A stretch of 64,000 nucleotides of DNA from Pseudomonas aeruginosa PAO1 (GTDB taxonomy: Bacteria; Pseudomonadota; Gammaproteobacteria; Pseudomonadales; Pseudomonadaceae). The first letter of the stretch is position 1, and the number at the start of each line of letters is the position of its first letter. The DNA lies in NCBI RefSeq assembly GCF_000006765.1, contig NC_002516.2. One strand, written 5' to 3'. The notes under the pieces were generated by a model. It ran no database searches. It worked only from the letters and a program-made list of their open reading frames with translations, and was not told the origin of the DNA. Shown here in pieces: positions 11,885 through 18,436 of the stretch. The position numbers and the translations under genes were made by a program.

Positions 11885-11917
11885 GACCGAGCGCGGGCGG
11901 ATGCTCAGGGCTTTTTT
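11871..11917 (-). other. Candidate -1 programmed ribosomal frameshift signal
   Basis: In-phase A_AAA_AAG (11917-11911), 6-nt spacer, GCATCCGC/GCGGATGC stem (11904-11871). Confidence 0.75.
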
Positions 11918-12921
11918 GGCCAGCGCGGCAGCTCGCGGGCGGTCCCCATGGCCACCGGCCGAGCCGGCAATTCGCCCCACTGCCCTTCGCCGTCGCCGGT
12001 GCGCTCCGGGAGCGCGACAGGGGCCGCCGCGGGCGGTGGCGGTGGATTGGCCGCCGATGGTGGCGGGTTCGACTGGCGACGGCGATGCAGCAGGGCGAAA
12101 TGTTCCACCGCATCGATGTCCTCCGCCTCGATCCGCTCGCCGCCGCGCCAGGCCGCATGGGCGCGCGCCGCGCGCAGCCAGACCAGGTCGGCGCGCAGGC
12201 CATCGACAGCCGCCTCGAAGCAGCGTCGAGCGATGCTGTCCAGCGCCGCATCGTCCAAGGGAATCCGCGCCAGCCGCCGGCGCGCCTCGGCGCAACGGCG
12301 GCGCAGGGTGTCCTGCTGGCCTTCCCAGCGTTCGACGAAGGCCTGCGGGTCGGCATCGAAGGCCAGCCGGCGACGGATGATCTCTGCCCGCTCGGCCGGC
12401 GGCGGCTGGGTGTCGAGACGCACGTTGAGGCCGAAACGGTCGAGCAGTTGCGGGCGCAGTTCGCCCTCTTCCGGGTTCATCGTGCCGATCAGCACGAAAC
12501 GCGCCGGATGCCGGTGGGAAATGCCATCGCGCTCGACCAGGTTGACGCCGCTGGCGGCGACGTCGAGCAACAAGTCCACCAGGTGGTCCGGCAGCAGGTT
12601 CACTTCGTCGACGTAGAGCACGCCGCCGTCGGCCTTGGCCAGCACGCCCGGGGAAAACCGCGCGCGACCTTCGCCGAGGGCGGCGTCCAGGTCGAGGCTG
12701 CCGACGATGCGCTCCTCGCTGGCGCCCAGCGGCAGGGTAACGAACTCGCCCGCCGGCAGCAGTTCGGCGACGCCCCGCGCCAGGGTCGACTTGGCCATTC
12801 CGCGCGGCCCCTCGATCAGTACCCCGCCGATCGCCGGATCGACCGCGGCCAGGCACAGCGCCAGCTTCAGTTCGTCGGCGGCGACCACGGCGGACAGGGG
12901 GTAATGCACGGTAGCGCTCAT
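11905..12921 (-). CDS. AAA+ chelatase ATPase subunit (ChlI/CobS-like)
   Basis: Walker [38 protein letters not shown], Pro-rich tail; 338 aa. Confidence 0.92.
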
Positions 12922-13061
12922 GGGGATTCCTGCGGCGGACGGACGGAAATACGGACCGCCAAGTCTATCAGGCCGGCGGCGCCGGTATCGAACCGTGAAA
13001 CAGTCGTTGAACCGGCCGCCTCGCTTGCAGTAAGCTCGGGACTCGTTCACGGGAGAAACCC

Positions 13062-13193
13062 ATGCCGCACACCCGCCATCCGCACCTGCATTCCAGTGCC
13101 TCGCGCCCTGGCTTGTCGTTGCGCGCGCGTGCGCCGCAGGCACCCCGTGCCGCGTATTTCTTCGGGTATTGGTTTAGCCACTCCGGCGCCTGA
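13062..13193 (+). CDS. Putative aromatic amino-acid leader peptide (43 aa)
   Basis: Translated by hand: [52 protein letters not shown] at 13051-13056. Confidence 0.72.
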
Positions 13194-13240
13194 TACCCCA
13201 ACGGCGCCCACGGTATACGGGACGCCTACCCTGCACACGC

Positions 13241-13279
13241 AAACCCCCGGTCGGCTCCCCGACCGGGGGTTTTGTTTTT
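13241..13279 (+). terminator. Attenuator-type intrinsic terminator upstream of DAHP synthase
   Basis: Perfect 14-bp stem AAACCCCCGGTCGG/CCGACCGGGGGTTT, 4-nt loop, followed by TGTTTTT. Confidence 0.85.
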
Positions 13280-13339
13280 CCGGCCCGTTTTTCCGGCCCA
13301 CAAGGCCACAACCACAGACCAACGCACAGGACATCGATC

Positions 13340-13444
13340 ATGACCGCATACCGCTACCGCACTGGCTACCCGCTCAACACCTGGCGATTTAGCGACGGCC
13401 GCCAGCCGCTCGCCAACCCACGACATTGCCGAACACCTCGATAG
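13340..13444 (+). CDS. Second putative leader peptide (34 aa)
   Basis: Translated by hand: MTAYRYRTGYPLNTWRFSDGRQPLANPRHCRTPR. CAGGA RBS upstream. Confidence 0.55.
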   Translation: MTAYRYRTGYPLNTWRFSDGRQPLANPRHCRTPR

Positions 13445-13491
13445 GGCACGACGCGCGCGGGACGCCCGCCGCCAGCCCAGGAAGCCAGACC

Positions 13492-14586
13492 ATGAACTCA
13501 TCCGTATCCGCACTGACCACCCTTTCGCCGAACGTCCAGGCCGTCGCCCTGCCCAGCGCCACCGCCCGTACCGCCCTGGAACGCCTGCCCAGCCCGCTCG
13601 AACTCAAGGCCCGCCAGCCGTTGCCGCTGGAGCTGGCCAGCCAGGTCGCCGCCAGCCGCGACGCCATCCGCGCCATCCTCGACGGCGACGACCCGCGCCT
13701 GCTGGTGGTAGTCGGTCCCTGTTCGATCCACGATCCCCGCTCCGCCCTCGAATACGCCGAACGCCTCGCCGCGCTGAGCGACGAACTCGACGGCCAGTTG
13801 CTCCTGGTGATGCGCGCCTACGTGGAAAAGCCACGCACCACGGTGGGCTGGAAGGGCCTCGCCTACGATCCGCACCTGGATGGCAGCGACGACATGGCCG
13901 CCGGCCTGGCGCTGTCCCGGCAACTGATGCTGGACATGCTGCGCCTCGGCCTGCCGCTGGCCACCGAACTCCTGCAACCGCTGGCCGCCGGCTACTTCGA
14001 CGACCTGCTGAGCTGGGCGGCGATCGGCGCGCGCACCAGCGAATCGCAGATCCACCGCGAGCTGGTCAGCGGCCTCGGCCTGCCGGTGGGCTTCAAGAAC
14101 GGCACCGACGGCGGCGTCGGCATCGCCTGCGACGCGATCCGTTCGGCGGCCCACGGCCACCGCCATTTCGGCCTCGACCCGCACGGTCACCCGGCGCTGA
14201 TCGAGACCCGCGGCAATCCGGACACCCATGTGGTGCTGCGCGGCGGCCGCCACGGTTCGAACTACGGCCCCGAGCAGGTGCAGGCCGTGCGCCAGGCCCT
14301 GGAAAGCCAGGGCATCGCCACGCGGATGATGGTCGATTGCAGTCACGCCAACAGCGGCAAGAACCCGCTGAACCAGCCCGGCGTCCTCGCCAGCGTGCTG
14401 GACCAGCGCCTGGCCGGTGCCAGCGACCTGGTCGGGGTAATGCTGGAAAGCCACCTGTTCGACGGTTGCCAGGCGCTCGGCGGCGAACTGCGCTACGGCG
14501 TCTCGATCACCGACGGCTGCCTCGGCTGGGAAGGCACCGAGCGGATTCTCCGCGACGCCGCCCGGCGGCTCGCCGAGCGGCGCTGA
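13492..14586 (+). CDS. 3-deoxy-7-phosphoheptulonate (DAHP) synthase, type I-alpha
   Basis: VVVGPCSIHD, MRAYVEKPRTTVGWKGL, AIGART, VGFKNGT, MVDCSHANS, SITDGC; AGGAAG RBS; 364 aa. Confidence 0.95.
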   Translation: MNSSVSALTTLSPNVQAVALPSATARTALERLPSPLELKARQPLPLELASQVAASRDAIRAILDGDDPRLLVVVGPCSIHDPRSALEYAERLAALSDELDGQLLLVMRAYVEKPRTTVGWKGLAYDPHLDGSDDMAAGLALSRQLMLDMLRLGLPLATELLQPLAAGYFDDLLSWAAIGARTSESQIHRELVSGLGLPVGFKNGTDGGVGIACDAIRSAAHGHRHFGLDPHGHPALIETRGNPDTHVVLRGGRHGSNYGPEQVQAVRQALESQGIATRMMVDCSHANSGKNPLNQPGVLASVLDQRLAGASDLVGVMLESHLFDGCQALGGELRYGVSITDGCLGWEGTERILRDAARRLAERR

Positions 14587-14614: not shown

Positions 14615-17600
14615 CTATTCCTCTTCGACGTCCAGCAGCAGGTTCTCCAGGGCCTCGCGATAGGCCCCCGGCTCCTGCCAGAGCCCGCGCCGCTGCGCCT
14701 CCACCAGGCGCTCGGCCATGTCGCGCAAGGCTTGCGGATTGTGCTGGCGGACGAACTCGCGGGTCTCCGCGTCGAGCAGGTAGGCGTCGGCCAGCAGCGC
14801 GTACTGGTGGTCGTCGATCAGCTCGCTGGTGGCATCGAAGGCGCACAGGTAGTCCACCGTCGCCGCCAGTTCGAAGGCGCCCTTGTAGCCGTGGCGCTTC
14901 ATCCCGGCGATCCACTTCGGATTCACCGCCCGCGCCCGCACCACCCGGTTGAGTTCTTCCTTGAGCGTGCGGATGCGCGGGTTGTCCGGCTGGCTGTGGT
15001 CGCCGTGGTAACTGGCCACCGGCGCGCCGCGCAGGGTTTCCACCGCCGCCAGCATGCCGCCCTGGAACTGGTAGTAGTCGTTGGAATCGAGCAGGTCGTG
15101 CTCGCGGTTGTCCTGGTTGTGCAGCACCGCCTGCAGGCGTTCCAGGCGCTGGGCGAAGCGTTCCCGCGCCGGCGTGCCGTCGTCGGCGGCACCGTAGGCG
15201 TAGCCGCCCCAGTTCAGGTAGACCTCGGCAAGGTCGGCGCGGGTCTCCCACAGCCGCTCTTCGATTGCGCCCTGCACGCCGGCGCCGTAGGCACCCGGCT
15301 TGGCGCCGAAGATCCGCCAGCCGGCCTGCCGGCGCGCCTCCGCCGGCGCCGTGCCCTGCGCCTCGAGGCGCTGGCGCTCCAGGCGTACGCGAGCGGCCAG
15401 CGGGTTCAGCTCCTCCGCCTCGTCCAGCTCGGCGACCGCCTGCACCGCCGCATCGAACAGGCGGATCAGGTTGGCGAAGGCGTCGCGGAAGAACCCGGAG
15501 ACCCGCAGCGTCACGTCGACCCGCGGGCGGTCCAGCAGGGAGACCGGGAGGATCTCGAAATCGGCGACGCGCTGGCTGCCGGCCTGCCAGACCGGTCGCA
15601 CGCCGAGCAGGGCCAGGGCCTGGGCGATGTCGTCGCCGCCGGTGCGCATGGTCGCCGTGCCCCACACCGAGAGGCCGAGCTGGCGCAGGTGATCGCCATG
15701 TTCCTGCAGGTGACGCTCGAGCAGCAGGTTGGCCGACTGGAAGCCGATGCGCCAGGCGGTCGGGGTCGGCAGGTTGCGCACGTCCACCGAGAAGAAGTTG
15801 CGTCCGGTGGGCAGCACGTCGAGTCGCCCGCGACTCGGCGCGCCGCTCGGACCGGCCGGTACGAAGCGCCCTTCGAGGGCTGCCAGCAGCCCGTCGATCT
15901 CGGCCCCGCCACAGGCGTCCAGGGTCGGTGCCACCTGTTCGCACAAGCCGCGCAACACCTCGCCGCTGGCACGCCAGGTGGCAGGCGGCGATTCGCCGCC
16001 CAGGCAGCGTTCTATCCAGTGCAACGCCAGCAATTCCAGGCGTTCGCGGGTATCCCCGAGAGTACGCCAGGGCTCCCCGCCCCGCTCTTCCAGGCAGGCA
16101 GGCCGCGCGCCCTGCCAGGCCTCGCCCATGTCGCAGGCCAGCGGATCGAAGCCCAGGCCAAGGTCGTCCGCCAGGCTCTTCAGCAACCCGGCGTTGGCGC
16201 CCTTGCCATCGCCGCGCGGAACCCGCAGCAGCGCCAGCAGGGTATCCAGGCGCAATCGCCCGCTCGGCGACTCGCCGAACACATGCAGGCCGTCGCGGAT
16301 CTGCGACTCCTTCAGGTCGCAGAGATAGGCGTCCAGCTGCGGCAGCCAGCTGTCCGGATCGTCGCTGAGCTGCAAGCCGATCTCGCGGTCGAGACGGTTG
16401 TCGCGCAGGAGGACGAGAATCTCGCCGCGCAACTGTTCGGCGCGGCGCGGGTCGAGCAGCGAGGCATCGTAGAACTCGTCGGCCAGGCGCTCCAGGTCGC
16501 GCAGCGGGCCGTAGCTCTCGGCGCGGGTCAGCGGCGGCATCAGGTGGTCGATGATCACCGCCTGGGTGCGGCGCTTGGCCTGGGCGCCCTCCCCCGGATC
16601 GTTGACGATGAACGGATAGATGTTCGGCAGCGGACCGAGCAACGCGTCCGGCCAGCATTCGGCGGACAGGCCGACTCCCTTGCCCGGCAGCCATTCCAGG
16701 TTACCGTGCTTGCCGACGTGCAGCAGGGCATCGGCGCGGTAGGCGTGGCGCAGCCAGAAGTAGAACGCCAGGTAGCCGTGCGGCGGCACCAGGTCGGGAT
16801 CGTGGTAGACCGCCGCCGGATCGAGCTGATAGCCGCGCGCCGGCTGGATGCCGACGAAGGTCAGGCCATAGCGCAGGCCGGCGACCATCATCCGTCCGTC
16901 GCGGAACATCGGGTCCTGTTGCGGCTCGCCCCAGCGCGCCAGCACCGCCTGGCGATTGCGCTCCGGCAGGCGTGCGAAGCAGGCCAGGTAGTCGTCCAGC
17001 GCCAGGCTCTGGGCGCAGGGCCGTAGGTCGAGATGCTCCAGGTCGTTGCTGACGCCGCCGAGCAACTGGCGGATCAGCTCGGTTCCGCTGGCGGGCAGTC
17101 CGTCGACCGGATAGCCCTGCTGGCGCAGGGCACGAAGGATGTTCAGCGCCGCCGCCGGGGTGTCCAGGCCGACGCCATTGCCGATCCGGCCATCGCGGGT
17201 CGGGTAGTTGGCCAGCACCAGCGCCACCCGTTTTTCCGCGTTTGGCTTGCGCGCCAGCTCGGCCCAGCGCCGCGCCAGTTCGGCGACGAAATCCATGCGC
17301 TCGTCGTCGGCGAGATAGCAGACCACGTCGCTCTCGCTGCGTTCGCTGCGCCAGGCCAGGCCCTTGAAACTGATCGGCCGGGTGACGATGCGCCCGTCCA
17401 GCTCCGGCAGCGCCACGTGCATGGCCAGGTCACGCGGCCCCAGGCCTTGCGGGTTGTCCAGCCAGAGCGGGCGGTTGTCCAGCGAGCAGATCGCCTGCAA
17501 TACCGGCACGTCGCGACGGAACGGACGCAACTCGGGCGCCTCCGGATTGGACTGGGCGAAACCGGTGGTATTGACGATCAGCGCGGCGTCGCTGCGCTCC

Positions 17601-18361
17601 AGCCAGTCTTCCACCTGCGCCAGGCAGGCGCTTTCCTTGAGGCTGGCCAGCGCGATCGGCAACGGGTTGAGCCCCTGCGCCGCGAGGCGTTCGCAGAAGC
17701 GTGCGATGAAGGCGGTGTTGGCTGCCTGCAGGTGGGTGCGATAGAACAGCAACGCGACCACCGGACGCCCGGCCTGCCAGTCGGCACGCCAGTGTTCCAG
17801 GGTCGCCTCGGCATGCCGTGGATGGAACAGTGCCACCCGCGGCAGCGCCTGCGGTTCGCGCCAGGCGTAGTCGCGGCCGAGGCACTGGCTGGCCAGGCAG
17901 CGGTAGAACTGCCCGGCGTTCTCCAGGCCGCCCTGGCGCAAGTATTGCCAGAAGCGCTCGGCCTGCTCCGCCGGCAGGTTGCCAAGGGCGCTCAGCTCCG
18001 GGTCGGGGCGGTCGTCGCCGGGCACCGGGATCAGCAGCGCGCCGCGCTCGGCCAGCGCCACCAGTTGCTCCACGCCGTAGCGCCAGTAGCCGATGCCGCC
18101 GTGCAGCGAAAGCAGGATCACCCGCGCGTGCCGCAGCACTTCCTCGACGTAGAGGTCCACCGAGGCGTGGTTCTGCAACTGCATGGGGTTGGCCAGGCGC
18201 AGGCTCGGGTAGTCGTCCGGCAGCGCACGGGCGGCCTCGGCCAGCAATGCGAGGTGCGAATCGCCGCTGCAGAGGATCACCAGCTCGGCGGGAGTCTGGG
18301 CCAGGTGGGCGATGCCGTCGTCGGGAACGAAGCCGCCGGGTTGGGTGCGCAACAGGTGCAT
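14615..18361 (-). CDS. cobN: Cobaltochelatase subunit CobN
   Basis: HVGKHGNLEWLPGK, IDHLMPP, LPTGRNF, NPKWIAGMKRHGYKGA; 1248 aa. Confidence 0.96.
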   Translation of the reverse strand: MHLLRTQPGGFVPDDGIAHLAQTPAELVILCSGDSHLALLAEAARALPDDYPSLRLANPMQLQNHASVDLYVEEVLRHARVILLSLHGGIGYWRYGVEQLVALAERGALLIPVPGDDRPDPELSALGNLPAEQAERFWQYLRQGGLENAGQFYRCLASQCLGRDYAWREPQALPRVALFHPRHAEATLEHWRADWQAGRPVVALLFYRTHLQAANTAFIARFCERLAAQGLNPLPIALASLKESACLAQVEDWLERSDAALIVNTTGFAQSNPEAPELRPFRRDVPVLQAICSLDNRPLWLDNPQGLGPRDLAMHVALPELDGRIVTRPISFKGLAWRSERSESDVVCYLADDERMDFVAELARRWAELARKPNAEKRVALVLANYPTRDGRIGNGVGLDTPAAALNILRALRQQGYPVDGLPASGTELIRQLLGGVSNDLEHLDLRPCAQSLALDDYLACFARLPERNRQAVLARWGEPQQDPMFRDGRMMVAGLRYGLTFVGIQPARGYQLDPAAVYHDPDLVPPHGYLAFYFWLRHAYRADALLHVGKHGNLEWLPGKGVGLSAECWPDALLGPLPNIYPFIVNDPGEGAQAKRRTQAVIIDHLMPPLTRAESYGPLRDLERLADEFYDASLLDPRRAEQLRGEILVLLRDNRLDREIGLQLSDDPDSWLPQLDAYLCDLKESQIRDGLHVFGESPSGRLRLDTLLALLRVPRGDGKGANAGLLKSLADDLGLGFDPLACDMGEAWQGARPACLEERGGEPWRTLGDTRERLELLALHWIERCLGGESPPATWRASGEVLRGLCEQVAPTLDACGGAEIDGLLAALEGRFVPAGPSGAPSRGRLDVLPTGRNFFSVDVRNLPTPTAWRIGFQSANLLLERHLQEHGDHLRQLGLSVWGTATMRTGGDDIAQALALLGVRPVWQAGSQRVADFEILPVSLLDRPRVDVTLRVSGFFRDAFANLIRLFDAAVQAVAELDEAEELNPLAARVRLERQRLEAQGTAPAEARRQAGWRIFGAKPGAYGAGVQGAIEERLWETRADLAEVYLNWGGYAYGAADDGTPARERFAQRLERLQAVLHNQDNREHDLLDSNDYYQFQGGMLAAVETLRGAPVASYHGDHSQPDNPRIRTLKEELNRVVRARAVNPKWIAGMKRHGYKGAFELAATVDYLCAFDATSELIDDHQYALLADAYLLDAETREFVRQHNPQALRDMAERLVEAQRRGLWQEPGAYREALENLLLDVEEE

Positions 18362-18436
18362 GGACGTTCTACCGGTAGGACGCAAGAAGCTGGGGCCGGC
18401 GAATCGCCATCGCCGGCCCCGGCCGGGGATCACGGA

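Follow-up and report, generated by a model that had tools for sequence, protein, structure and literature searches.

A conserved tyrosine-codon leader ORF between the P15 terminator and an AroF-like DAHP synthase gene, a possible translational attenuator of the Pseudomonadaceae

In the stretch of DNA analyzed here, 64,000 nucleotides of Pseudomonas aeruginosa PAO1 (NCBI RefSeq assembly GCF_000006765.1, contig NC_002516.2; hereafter the window), a gene for a class I-alpha DAHP (3-deoxy-D-arabinoheptulosonate-7-phosphate) synthase is preceded on its own strand by a leader with two short upstream open reading frames (uORFs). From 5' to 3', the plus strand carries uORF1, the Rfam family P15 with its intrinsic terminator, uORF2, which is the subject of this study, and the DAHP synthase gene (Table 1). 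This order is kept in every locus that we checked and bears out the tandem two-stage leader proposed in an initial annotation of this DNA. Other elements of that annotation held as well: the ORF list contains exactly the 34-residue peptide it had described, with three Tyr (codons at 13349, 13355 and 13367), one Trp (13382) and one Phe (13388), led by a Shine-Dalgarno (SD) sequence, AGGA, 8 nt ahead of its ATG, and 47 nt separate its stop codon from the ATG of the DAHP synthase gene. The terminator that the annotation had failed to see behind uORF2 is indeed missing, since the terminator-like sites reported by a scan lie only at 13139-13283, in the P15 terminator region, with no stem plus U-run after 13283 and before the gene. 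The nearest genome compared is 100% identical over 12930-13700. The DAHP synthase itself scores above the NCBIfam NF009395 cut-off and below those of AroH and AroG, and its best match in the PDB is the Tyr-sensitive enzyme 6AGM/6AGL (372 bits, as compared with 340 bits for the Phe-sensitive enzyme). We regard it as AroF-like and closest to the Tyr-sensitive type, and infer its effector specificity from these similarities.

We compared the P. aeruginosa leader with 53 related loci, of which 30 come from the same genus (found by DNA similarity), 20 from other Pseudomonadaceae genera (found with a hidden Markov model, HMM, of the peptide) and three from genomes that the HMM had missed. All 53 carry an ATG-initiated ORF of 29-50 codons at the position of uORF2. 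In the same-genus loci this ORF has 31-34 codons and lies behind the P15 terminator and ahead of the DAHP synthase gene; the other genera have 29-34 codons with GAGGA 5-9 nt upstream, and the HMM-missed genomes have a diverged uORF2 behind P15, of 50 codons in two cases and 31 in the third. The SD's AGG, the start codon ATG and the stop codon TAG show no variation across 30 aligned, diverse sequences and are common to all 53 loci, and length changes occur only in frame: the distance from ATG to the TGG of the Trp codon is 33, 36, 39, 42 or 45 nt, that from TGG to a conserved CGAACA near the end of the frame is 42, 45 or 48 nt, and that from CGAACA to the end is always 15 nt. Among 47 distinct sequences, tyrosine (TAY) triplets occur 185 times in the frame of uORF2 versus 0 and 3 times in the other two, and Tyr makes up 31% of the codons between Met and Trp, as compared with ~2% in neighboring proteins. 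Every peptide keeps three to five Tyr, plus W and F, at positions that shift between lineages; such constancy of number at shifting positions is the signature of selection on codon content and not of a folded protein. An open frame of 34 codons is by itself weak evidence in DNA of 66% GC. It is because of the invariant AGG, ATG and TAG, the restriction of insertions and deletions to whole codons and the Tyr-codon enrichment, all seen across the related loci, that we conclude from comparative data that uORF2 is not a chance ORF.

The same comparison bears on the idea that the locus carries an untranslated RNA element, whose conservation would reflect an RNA structure or a binding site and whose open frame would be incidental. 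The two most conserved blocks are kept as nucleotides and contain rare codons, the C-terminal half is poorly conserved as protein, variation shows no excess at third codon positions, and by our own estimate a 34-codon open frame has about even odds at such a GC content. We nevertheless consider this idea very unlikely, given an SD AGG and an ATG that are invariant at fixed spacing, a stop codon at a fixed position, a frame that survives at least five length classes in one segment and three in another, separate one, and Tyr codons that crowd into a single frame while their positions turn over.

With an HMM built from 18 uORF2 peptides, five genomes gave exactly one match apiece, at E 1e-15 to 1e-19; all further matches had E > 0.08. 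The single match per genome leaves unsupported the initial annotation's statement on similar micro-ORFs ahead of other amino-acid genes in pseudomonads. With an HMM of 29 peptides, 136 of 301 sampled Pseudomonadaceae genomes from 9 of 21 genera gave one match each, a figure that is a lower bound, as some of the genomes missed by the HMM still carry uORF2; beyond the family, there were two marginal matches among 292 genomes of the order. uORF2 always precedes the same DAHP synthase gene, and each of the 23 loci scanned with Rfam has P15 together with uORF2. Judged by these searches, uORF2 is a single-locus, family-wide element of the Pseudomonadaceae. The suggestion that it could represent an undescribed family of leader peptides stands in a narrower form: neither Pfam nor NCBIfam has a family for the peptide, whose annotation goes no further than 'hypothetical protein', but the element is single-copy and tied to one DAHP synthase gene. 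Specifically, three uORF2 peptides and uORF1 gave no Pfam or NCBIfam profile match at E <= 1, save a meaningless one at 0.14; no Rfam family matched within 13340-13444 even at E <= 10, the P15 model ending at 13269; and neither uORF2 nor a reading of P15 as an attenuator turned up in the open-access literature searched.

Conservation of uORF2 is most stringent at the nucleotide level. The Trp-Arg-Phe-Ser codons, TGG CGA TTT AGC, are identical in 47 of 47 distinct sequences, across genera whose DAHP synthases are ~70% identical, and in the block near the end of the frame CGA is kept in 47/47 and ACA in 46/47. Both blocks contain codons, CGA and TTT among them, that are rare in high-GC Pseudomonas genomes. 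As TGG CGA TTT AGC does not vary despite its rare codons, selection on the peptide alone cannot explain it, and the alignment places the constraint at the RNA level. In terms of the peptide, the TWRF and CRTP motifs to which the initial annotation had drawn attention fared unequally: WRFS shows no variation and R-T-(P/L) ahead of the stop almost none, while the Cys of CRTP is not conserved. TGG (CGA) TTT AGC, for Trp-(Arg)-Phe-Ser, is also common to both leaders, at 13170-13178 in uORF1 and 13382-13393 in uORF2, and the shared UUUAGC suggests either a duplication of the leader or a common RNA-level function.

An RNA-level constraint of this kind could reflect ribosome-dependent protection of the mRNA, the invariant AU-rich GAUUUAG, set in RNA that is for the rest rich in GC, being an RNase E-like cleavage site that stalled or translating ribosomes cover, so that starvation would stabilize the message. 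GA/UUU fits the RN/WUU preference of RNase E, the patch is invariant as nucleotides with its synonymous sites included, UUUAGC also follows the Trp codon of uORF1, and the ends of RNA contigs near 13294-13298 (described below) suggest processing within the leader. However, the contigs are unbroken at 13385-13392, and such protection would leave unexplained both a conserved GCCAG at the ribosome-binding site (RBS) of the DAHP synthase gene and the hairpin that precedes it. We think that this mechanism is improbable.

These two features provide the structural side of the case. A GC-rich hairpin follows uORF2 in all 39 distinct tails (-15 to -23 kcal/mol, mean z -3.3 versus shuffles), beginning 0-3 nt after the stop and ending 1-6 nt, mostly 3, from the SD of the DAHP synthase gene; its stem sequences differ among divergent lineages, and no U-run was found on it in 40 distinct tails. 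Between this SD and the ATG, 38 of 50 loci have GCCAG, in nine different flanking contexts. GCCAG is the complement of CUGGC in the invariant block, and several lineages have a longer complementary stretch of 9-11 bp, whose register differs among them and which in some cases takes in the SD or the AUG. Partition-function folds predict pairing of CUGGCG with the DAHP RBS at P > 0.65 in 31/50 sequences. Set against 50 natural RBS-like windows, 15 of 30 distinct pairs of invariant element and RBS form a duplex that ranks among the strongest 5%, and in 10 of the 30 it surpasses every window. For pairing of the whole of uORF2 with the RBS, the comparison with natural RBS-like windows is not significant (5/49 at <= 0.05), and only the test of the invariant element gives a signal.

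We also modelled a ribosome footprint at each codon of uORF2 in 30 distinct sequences, taking the opening energy of the DAHP RBS as the measure. Opening energy changes by -1.4 to -1.9 kcal/mol only when the A-site lies at codons -5 to +5 around Trp, a window that comprises the last Tyr codons, Trp and Phe, with about zero change elsewhere; with the modelled ribosome at the stop codon, the opening cost rises by 0.6-0.9 kcal/mol. Of the mechanisms put forward in the initial annotation, an effect on translation initiation fits the structure predictions best; variants with 50-residue peptides lower the odds of an arrest peptide with a fixed geometry. In an arrest-peptide mechanism, a free aromatic amino acid would act through WRFS and the C-terminal R-T-x-x of the nascent chain to hold the ribosome at the UAG, and this stall would melt the hairpin. 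The invariance of WRFS and near invariance of R-T, the presence of UAG in every locus and a hairpin starting 0-3 nt beyond it would suit such a mechanism, but the synonymous sites of the motif are as invariant as the rest, so that selection on the RNA suffices to explain its conservation, and the ~16 residues inserted between the motifs in the 50-residue variants are incompatible with a fixed tunnel geometry. Ligand-induced stalling, moreover, normally induces expression, which is the wrong sign for a biosynthetic gene, a modelled ribosome at the stop makes the RBS less accessible, and the strong Tyr-codon enrichment would be left unexplained. We consider an arrest peptide very unlikely.

The 50-codon variants belong to one genus (loci L081 and L082) and carry their extra residues after AWRF(S/T) and ahead of a CRTPQ at the C-terminus; CGAACAC still precedes TAG, the RBS (CCCAGGAAGCC) resembles that of P. 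aeruginosa, and in one of the two ACC replaces AGC in the otherwise invariant block. Across lineages, 13 to ~32 residues separate WRFS from the stop. The stop codon of uORF2 is TAG in 53/53 loci and that of uORF1 is TGA in 49/49. TAG is an uncommon stop in these genomes, and an effect specific to release factor 1 (RF1) or pairing of its G are candidate reasons for its constancy at uORF2.

The explanation that we favor, with a probability of about 0.45, is translational attenuation by ribosome stalling, in which starvation would stall ribosomes within uORF2 and so unmask translation of the AroF-type DAHP synthase. From the anatomy, conservation, Tyr-codon content, nucleotide invariance and predicted pairings of the leader we infer that uORF2 is translated, that ribosomes stall in it and that the output is translational. 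With plentiful charged tRNA-Tyr (and tRNA-Trp and tRNA-Phe), ribosomes would cross uORF2 and terminate at the UAG, leaving CUGGCGAUUU in the W-R-F codons free; the free segment would pair with the GCCAG/SD region of the DAHP RBS and initiation would be low, the more readily as this RBS is also bordered on its 5' side by the stable hairpin. With poorly charged tRNAs, a ribosome stalled on the Tyr, Trp or Phe codons would cover the pairing segment, and the DAHP start would open. In P. aeruginosa, a CUGGCU among the Tyr codons may take the anti-RBS role. The minimum free energy (MFE) fold of the P. aeruginosa leader pairs this CUGGCU (13362-13367) with AGCCAG (13483-13488), a 6-bp match that is not significant alone, and in a masked-ribosome calculation the opening energy drops from 11.9 to 6.8 kcal/mol.

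A number of observations weigh against attenuation by stalling as just described. This mechanism does not account for the invariance of CGAACAC or of the UAG stop. An analysis of codon-position diversity found no third-position excess of variation in uORF2, a result that we take as neutral for a leader ORF; because of it, purifying selection on the peptide was dropped as an argument, and the case for the frame rests on frame, start, stop and Tyr-codon content. Pairing between the element and the RBS is lineage-dependent and not above background in ~40% of sequences. In lineages that lack GCCAG, the predicted partner of the invariant element is instead either the 3' end of uORF2 or the hairpin's 3' arm, and RNAalifold offers an alternative of the latter kind, CUGGCG:CGCCGG. 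RNAalifold on MAFFT alignments otherwise returned few pairs and little covariation, because the stems are invariant or, in divergent lineages, misaligned, and since the element never varies, covariation cannot support its pairing with the RBS. The mean effect of the modelled ribosome on opening energy is modest. P. aeruginosa is itself a weak member of the family: its uORF2 has three Tyr codons, its hairpin does not stand out from shuffled sequences (z -0.8), its leader fold is unremarkable (z -0.94), its element:RBS duplex is at background level, and its invariant element is predicted to pair inside uORF2. The structural model is best read as a family-level proposal with lineage variation and not as a demonstrated switch.

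Much of the same anatomy could serve Rho-dependent attenuation of the polarity type, with uORF2 again sensing charged tRNA-Tyr, tRNA-Trp and tRNA-Phe and the output being transcriptional. A stalled ribosome would then shield C-rich RNA or keep RNA polymerase coupled, while quick termination at the UAG would bare the RNA, the GC-rich hairpin would act as a pause site, and Rho would stop transcription at or inside the DAHP synthase gene. No intrinsic terminator follows uORF2, a stable hairpin without a U-run stands right behind the stop in all lineages, and the leader is rich in C and poor in G (fractions of 0.35 and 0.19 between -45 and the Trp codon); Rho could, moreover, join RBS masking through polarity, so that the two might act side by side. 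The C>G skew is, however, unspecific, running at 1.3-2.4 throughout the region and in the coding gene as well, merely 36-48 nt lie between the stop and the next start codon, and the complementarity of the invariant element to the RBS is left unexplained. A Rho-dependent output strikes us as unlikely.

Table 1. Features of the DAHP synthase leader and gene in the window
Feature	Position	Strand	Details and basis
uORF1 (43 aa)	13062..13193	+	SD GGGAGA 13051-13056; stop TGA; ORF list
Rfam RF00627, 'Pseudomonas sRNA P15'	13151..13269	+	104.7 bits (gathering score 70), E 3e-22
Stage-1 intrinsic terminator	13241..13279	+	14-bp GC-rich stem (13241-13272), then T-run; terminator scan and sequence
Small conserved GGCC-loop-GGCC hairpin	13295..13307	+	directly 3' of the T-run; fold and conservation
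SD of uORF2, AGGA	13328..13331	+	8 nt upstream of ATG
uORF2	13340..13444	+	34 codons plus TAG (13442-13444); ORF list and sequence
CUGGCU within the Tyr-codon region of uORF2	13362..13367	+	MFE pairing with AGCCAG 13483-13488
Invariant RNA element C-TGGCGATTTAGC	13381..13393	+	codons W-R-F-S; candidate anti-RBS segment; identity in 47/47 distinct sequences, predicted pairing with the DAHP RBS
Invariant CGAACAC	13430..13436	+	codons R-T, 12 nt ahead of the stop; alignment
GC-rich hairpin without U-run	13444..13478	+	core 13453-13472; between the uORF2 stop and the DAHP SD; folds
DAHP synthase RBS	13479..13494	+	AGGA 13479-13482, AGCCAG 13483-13488, ATG 13492-13494; sequence
Class I-alpha DAHP synthase, AroF-like	13492..14586	+	NF009395, 501 bits (cut-off 343)

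Upstream of uORF2, the first stage of the leader has the outward form of a classical attenuator. uORF1 has a cluster of aromatic codons, Y-F-F-G-Y-W-F, at 13155-13175, within the first P15 helix, and its orthologs in 49 loci have 39-45 codons behind an SD GGAGA, end in ..GYFFYGYWFS(H/Q)RRA and stop at TGA. P15 overlaps the 3' end of uORF1 and takes in the terminator stem. It is catalogued as a small RNA (sRNA), was seen as a Northern band of ~180 nt, and was placed between an opposite-strand gene of 1014 nt and a 1092-nt gene 221 nt downstream, with no reading as a leader or attenuator given (Livny et al., 2006; PMC1524904). By its anatomy, P15 resembles less a trans-acting sRNA than a leader transcript cut short by termination in an aromatic amino-acid attenuator. 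Simple equilibrium, truncated-transcript and masked folding found no ribosome-dependent antiterminator for uORF1 and P15, so it is from anatomy only that we draw this reading.

If so, the locus would hold two leader peptides in series with different outputs, first a terminator attenuator of the P15 type and then a tyrosine-codon leader that gates initiation through an anti-RBS element. Stage 1, made up of uORF1 and the P15 terminator, would set transcriptional read-through, and uORF2 would act, without a terminator, on the mRNA that has read through. We put this full two-output arrangement forward tentatively, as a possibility on the doubtful side.

RNA evidence for the leader consists of contigs assembled (Logan) from public RNA runs. 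One contig, 13057-13732, crosses the terminator and uORF2 into the DAHP synthase gene; a contig starts at 13057 in two runs of one sample, and the divergent intergenic stretch 12923-13046 is uncovered. With contigs beginning at 13057 and nothing covered upstream, the transcription start of the leader lies shortly upstream of uORF1. A weak TTGAAC-N18-TAAGCT (13007-13036), picked out by eye, is a candidate promoter. Contigs of two further 5' ends begin at 13294 and 13298, in two runs, one of which has no P15 coverage at all. Both ends coincide with the small GGCC-loop-GGCC hairpin (13293-13307), whose conservation extends across genera; in locus L077 it has changed to GGTC/GACC. Processing of read-through mRNA and a second transcription start would both fit these ends; a processed, hairpin-protected end of the uORF2-DAHP mRNA seems the likelier of the two. 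A promoter between the terminator and uORF2 was considered; the scan gave no sigma-70-like site there, and in compact genera the spacer measures just ~30-45 nt. The leader and the DAHP synthase gene are flanked by two minus-strand genes, 11905-12922 and 14615-18433; judged from the translations, one resembles an AAA+ Mg-chelatase (ChlI/MoxR-like) subunit and the other CobN.

uORF2 shares features with several known kinds of leader. Like those of the trpL, pheL, hisL and leuL attenuators, it is a short SD-led ORF in a 5' leader, enriched in codons for the end product, and the position of the ribosome on it is presumed to choose between pairings. It differs from them in that the hairpin-plus-U-run terminator belongs to uORF1 and P15, the likely output of uORF2 being RBS accessibility or Rho, and in that its regulatory codons are dispersed (Y-R-Y-Y-R ... 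W-R-F) and not in a run. The mutually exclusive terminator and antiterminator pairings of the trpL/pheL type do not apply to uORF2, as there is no terminator to oppose. Closer in logic is the translational attenuation of ermC, cat and cmlA, in which leader RNA pairs with the downstream RBS (a pairing predicted here for 31/50 sequences), a stalled ribosome frees it and no terminator takes part. There, however, the stall is caused by an antibiotic together with a specific nascent peptide, while the presumed trigger in uORF2 is uncharged tRNA at Tyr, Trp and Phe codons; no sequence relationship links these leaders, and the pairing of uORF2 is weak in P. aeruginosa. TnaC and SpeFL are likewise small leader ORFs with an invariant Trp-containing motif and a conserved C-terminus by the stop, and at 34 residues uORF2 is similar in size to SpeFL. 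In contrast, those leaders respond to a free ligand and work through Rho to switch on catabolic or decarboxylase genes, the DAHP synthase gene is biosynthetic, and the motif of uORF2 is kept as nucleotides and varies in spacing by 16 residues.

By subject, the nearest parallels are other leaders of Tyr-type DAHP synthase genes. An aroR-aroF attenuator in Corynebacterium glutamicum was reportedly described by Neshat et al. in 2014, and putative attenuators have been placed before aroF>tyrA in Vibrio (PMC1173090) and before aroF in Shewanella (PMC2659441). All of these share with the proposal for the present locus leader control of a Tyr-type DAHP synthase by the supply of aromatic amino acids. 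They are single leaders read as transcription attenuators, whereas the Pseudomonadaceae have two in tandem, the second without a terminator. Rfam RF00627 (P15) belongs to the very same locus, directly upstream, with uORF2 outside the model. Among the papers searched (open-access text) we found no example of leader peptides in series. Serial arrangements are well known for riboswitches and T-boxes. We know of none for leader peptides.

DAHP synthase is the entry to aromatic amino-acid biosynthesis and in pseudomonads also feeds the precursors of phenazines, quinolones and siderophores; to our knowledge, the genetic control of this enzyme in Pseudomonas is poorly described. If the proposed leader control is true, the orphan 'sRNA' P15 would gain a function, and uORF2 would add a leader-peptide family that is represented in none of Pfam, NCBIfam and Rfam. 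The locus would then provide a natural case of starvation-sensing translational attenuation in series with a classical terminator attenuator, that is, an amino-acid sensor with two checkpoints, transcription and then translation. Engineers deregulating aroF-type genes in P. putida or P. aeruginosa should, in that case, remove both leaders, and tRNA-modification mutants of the miaA type, in which UNN codons are read slowly, would be expected to derepress the DAHP synthase gene.

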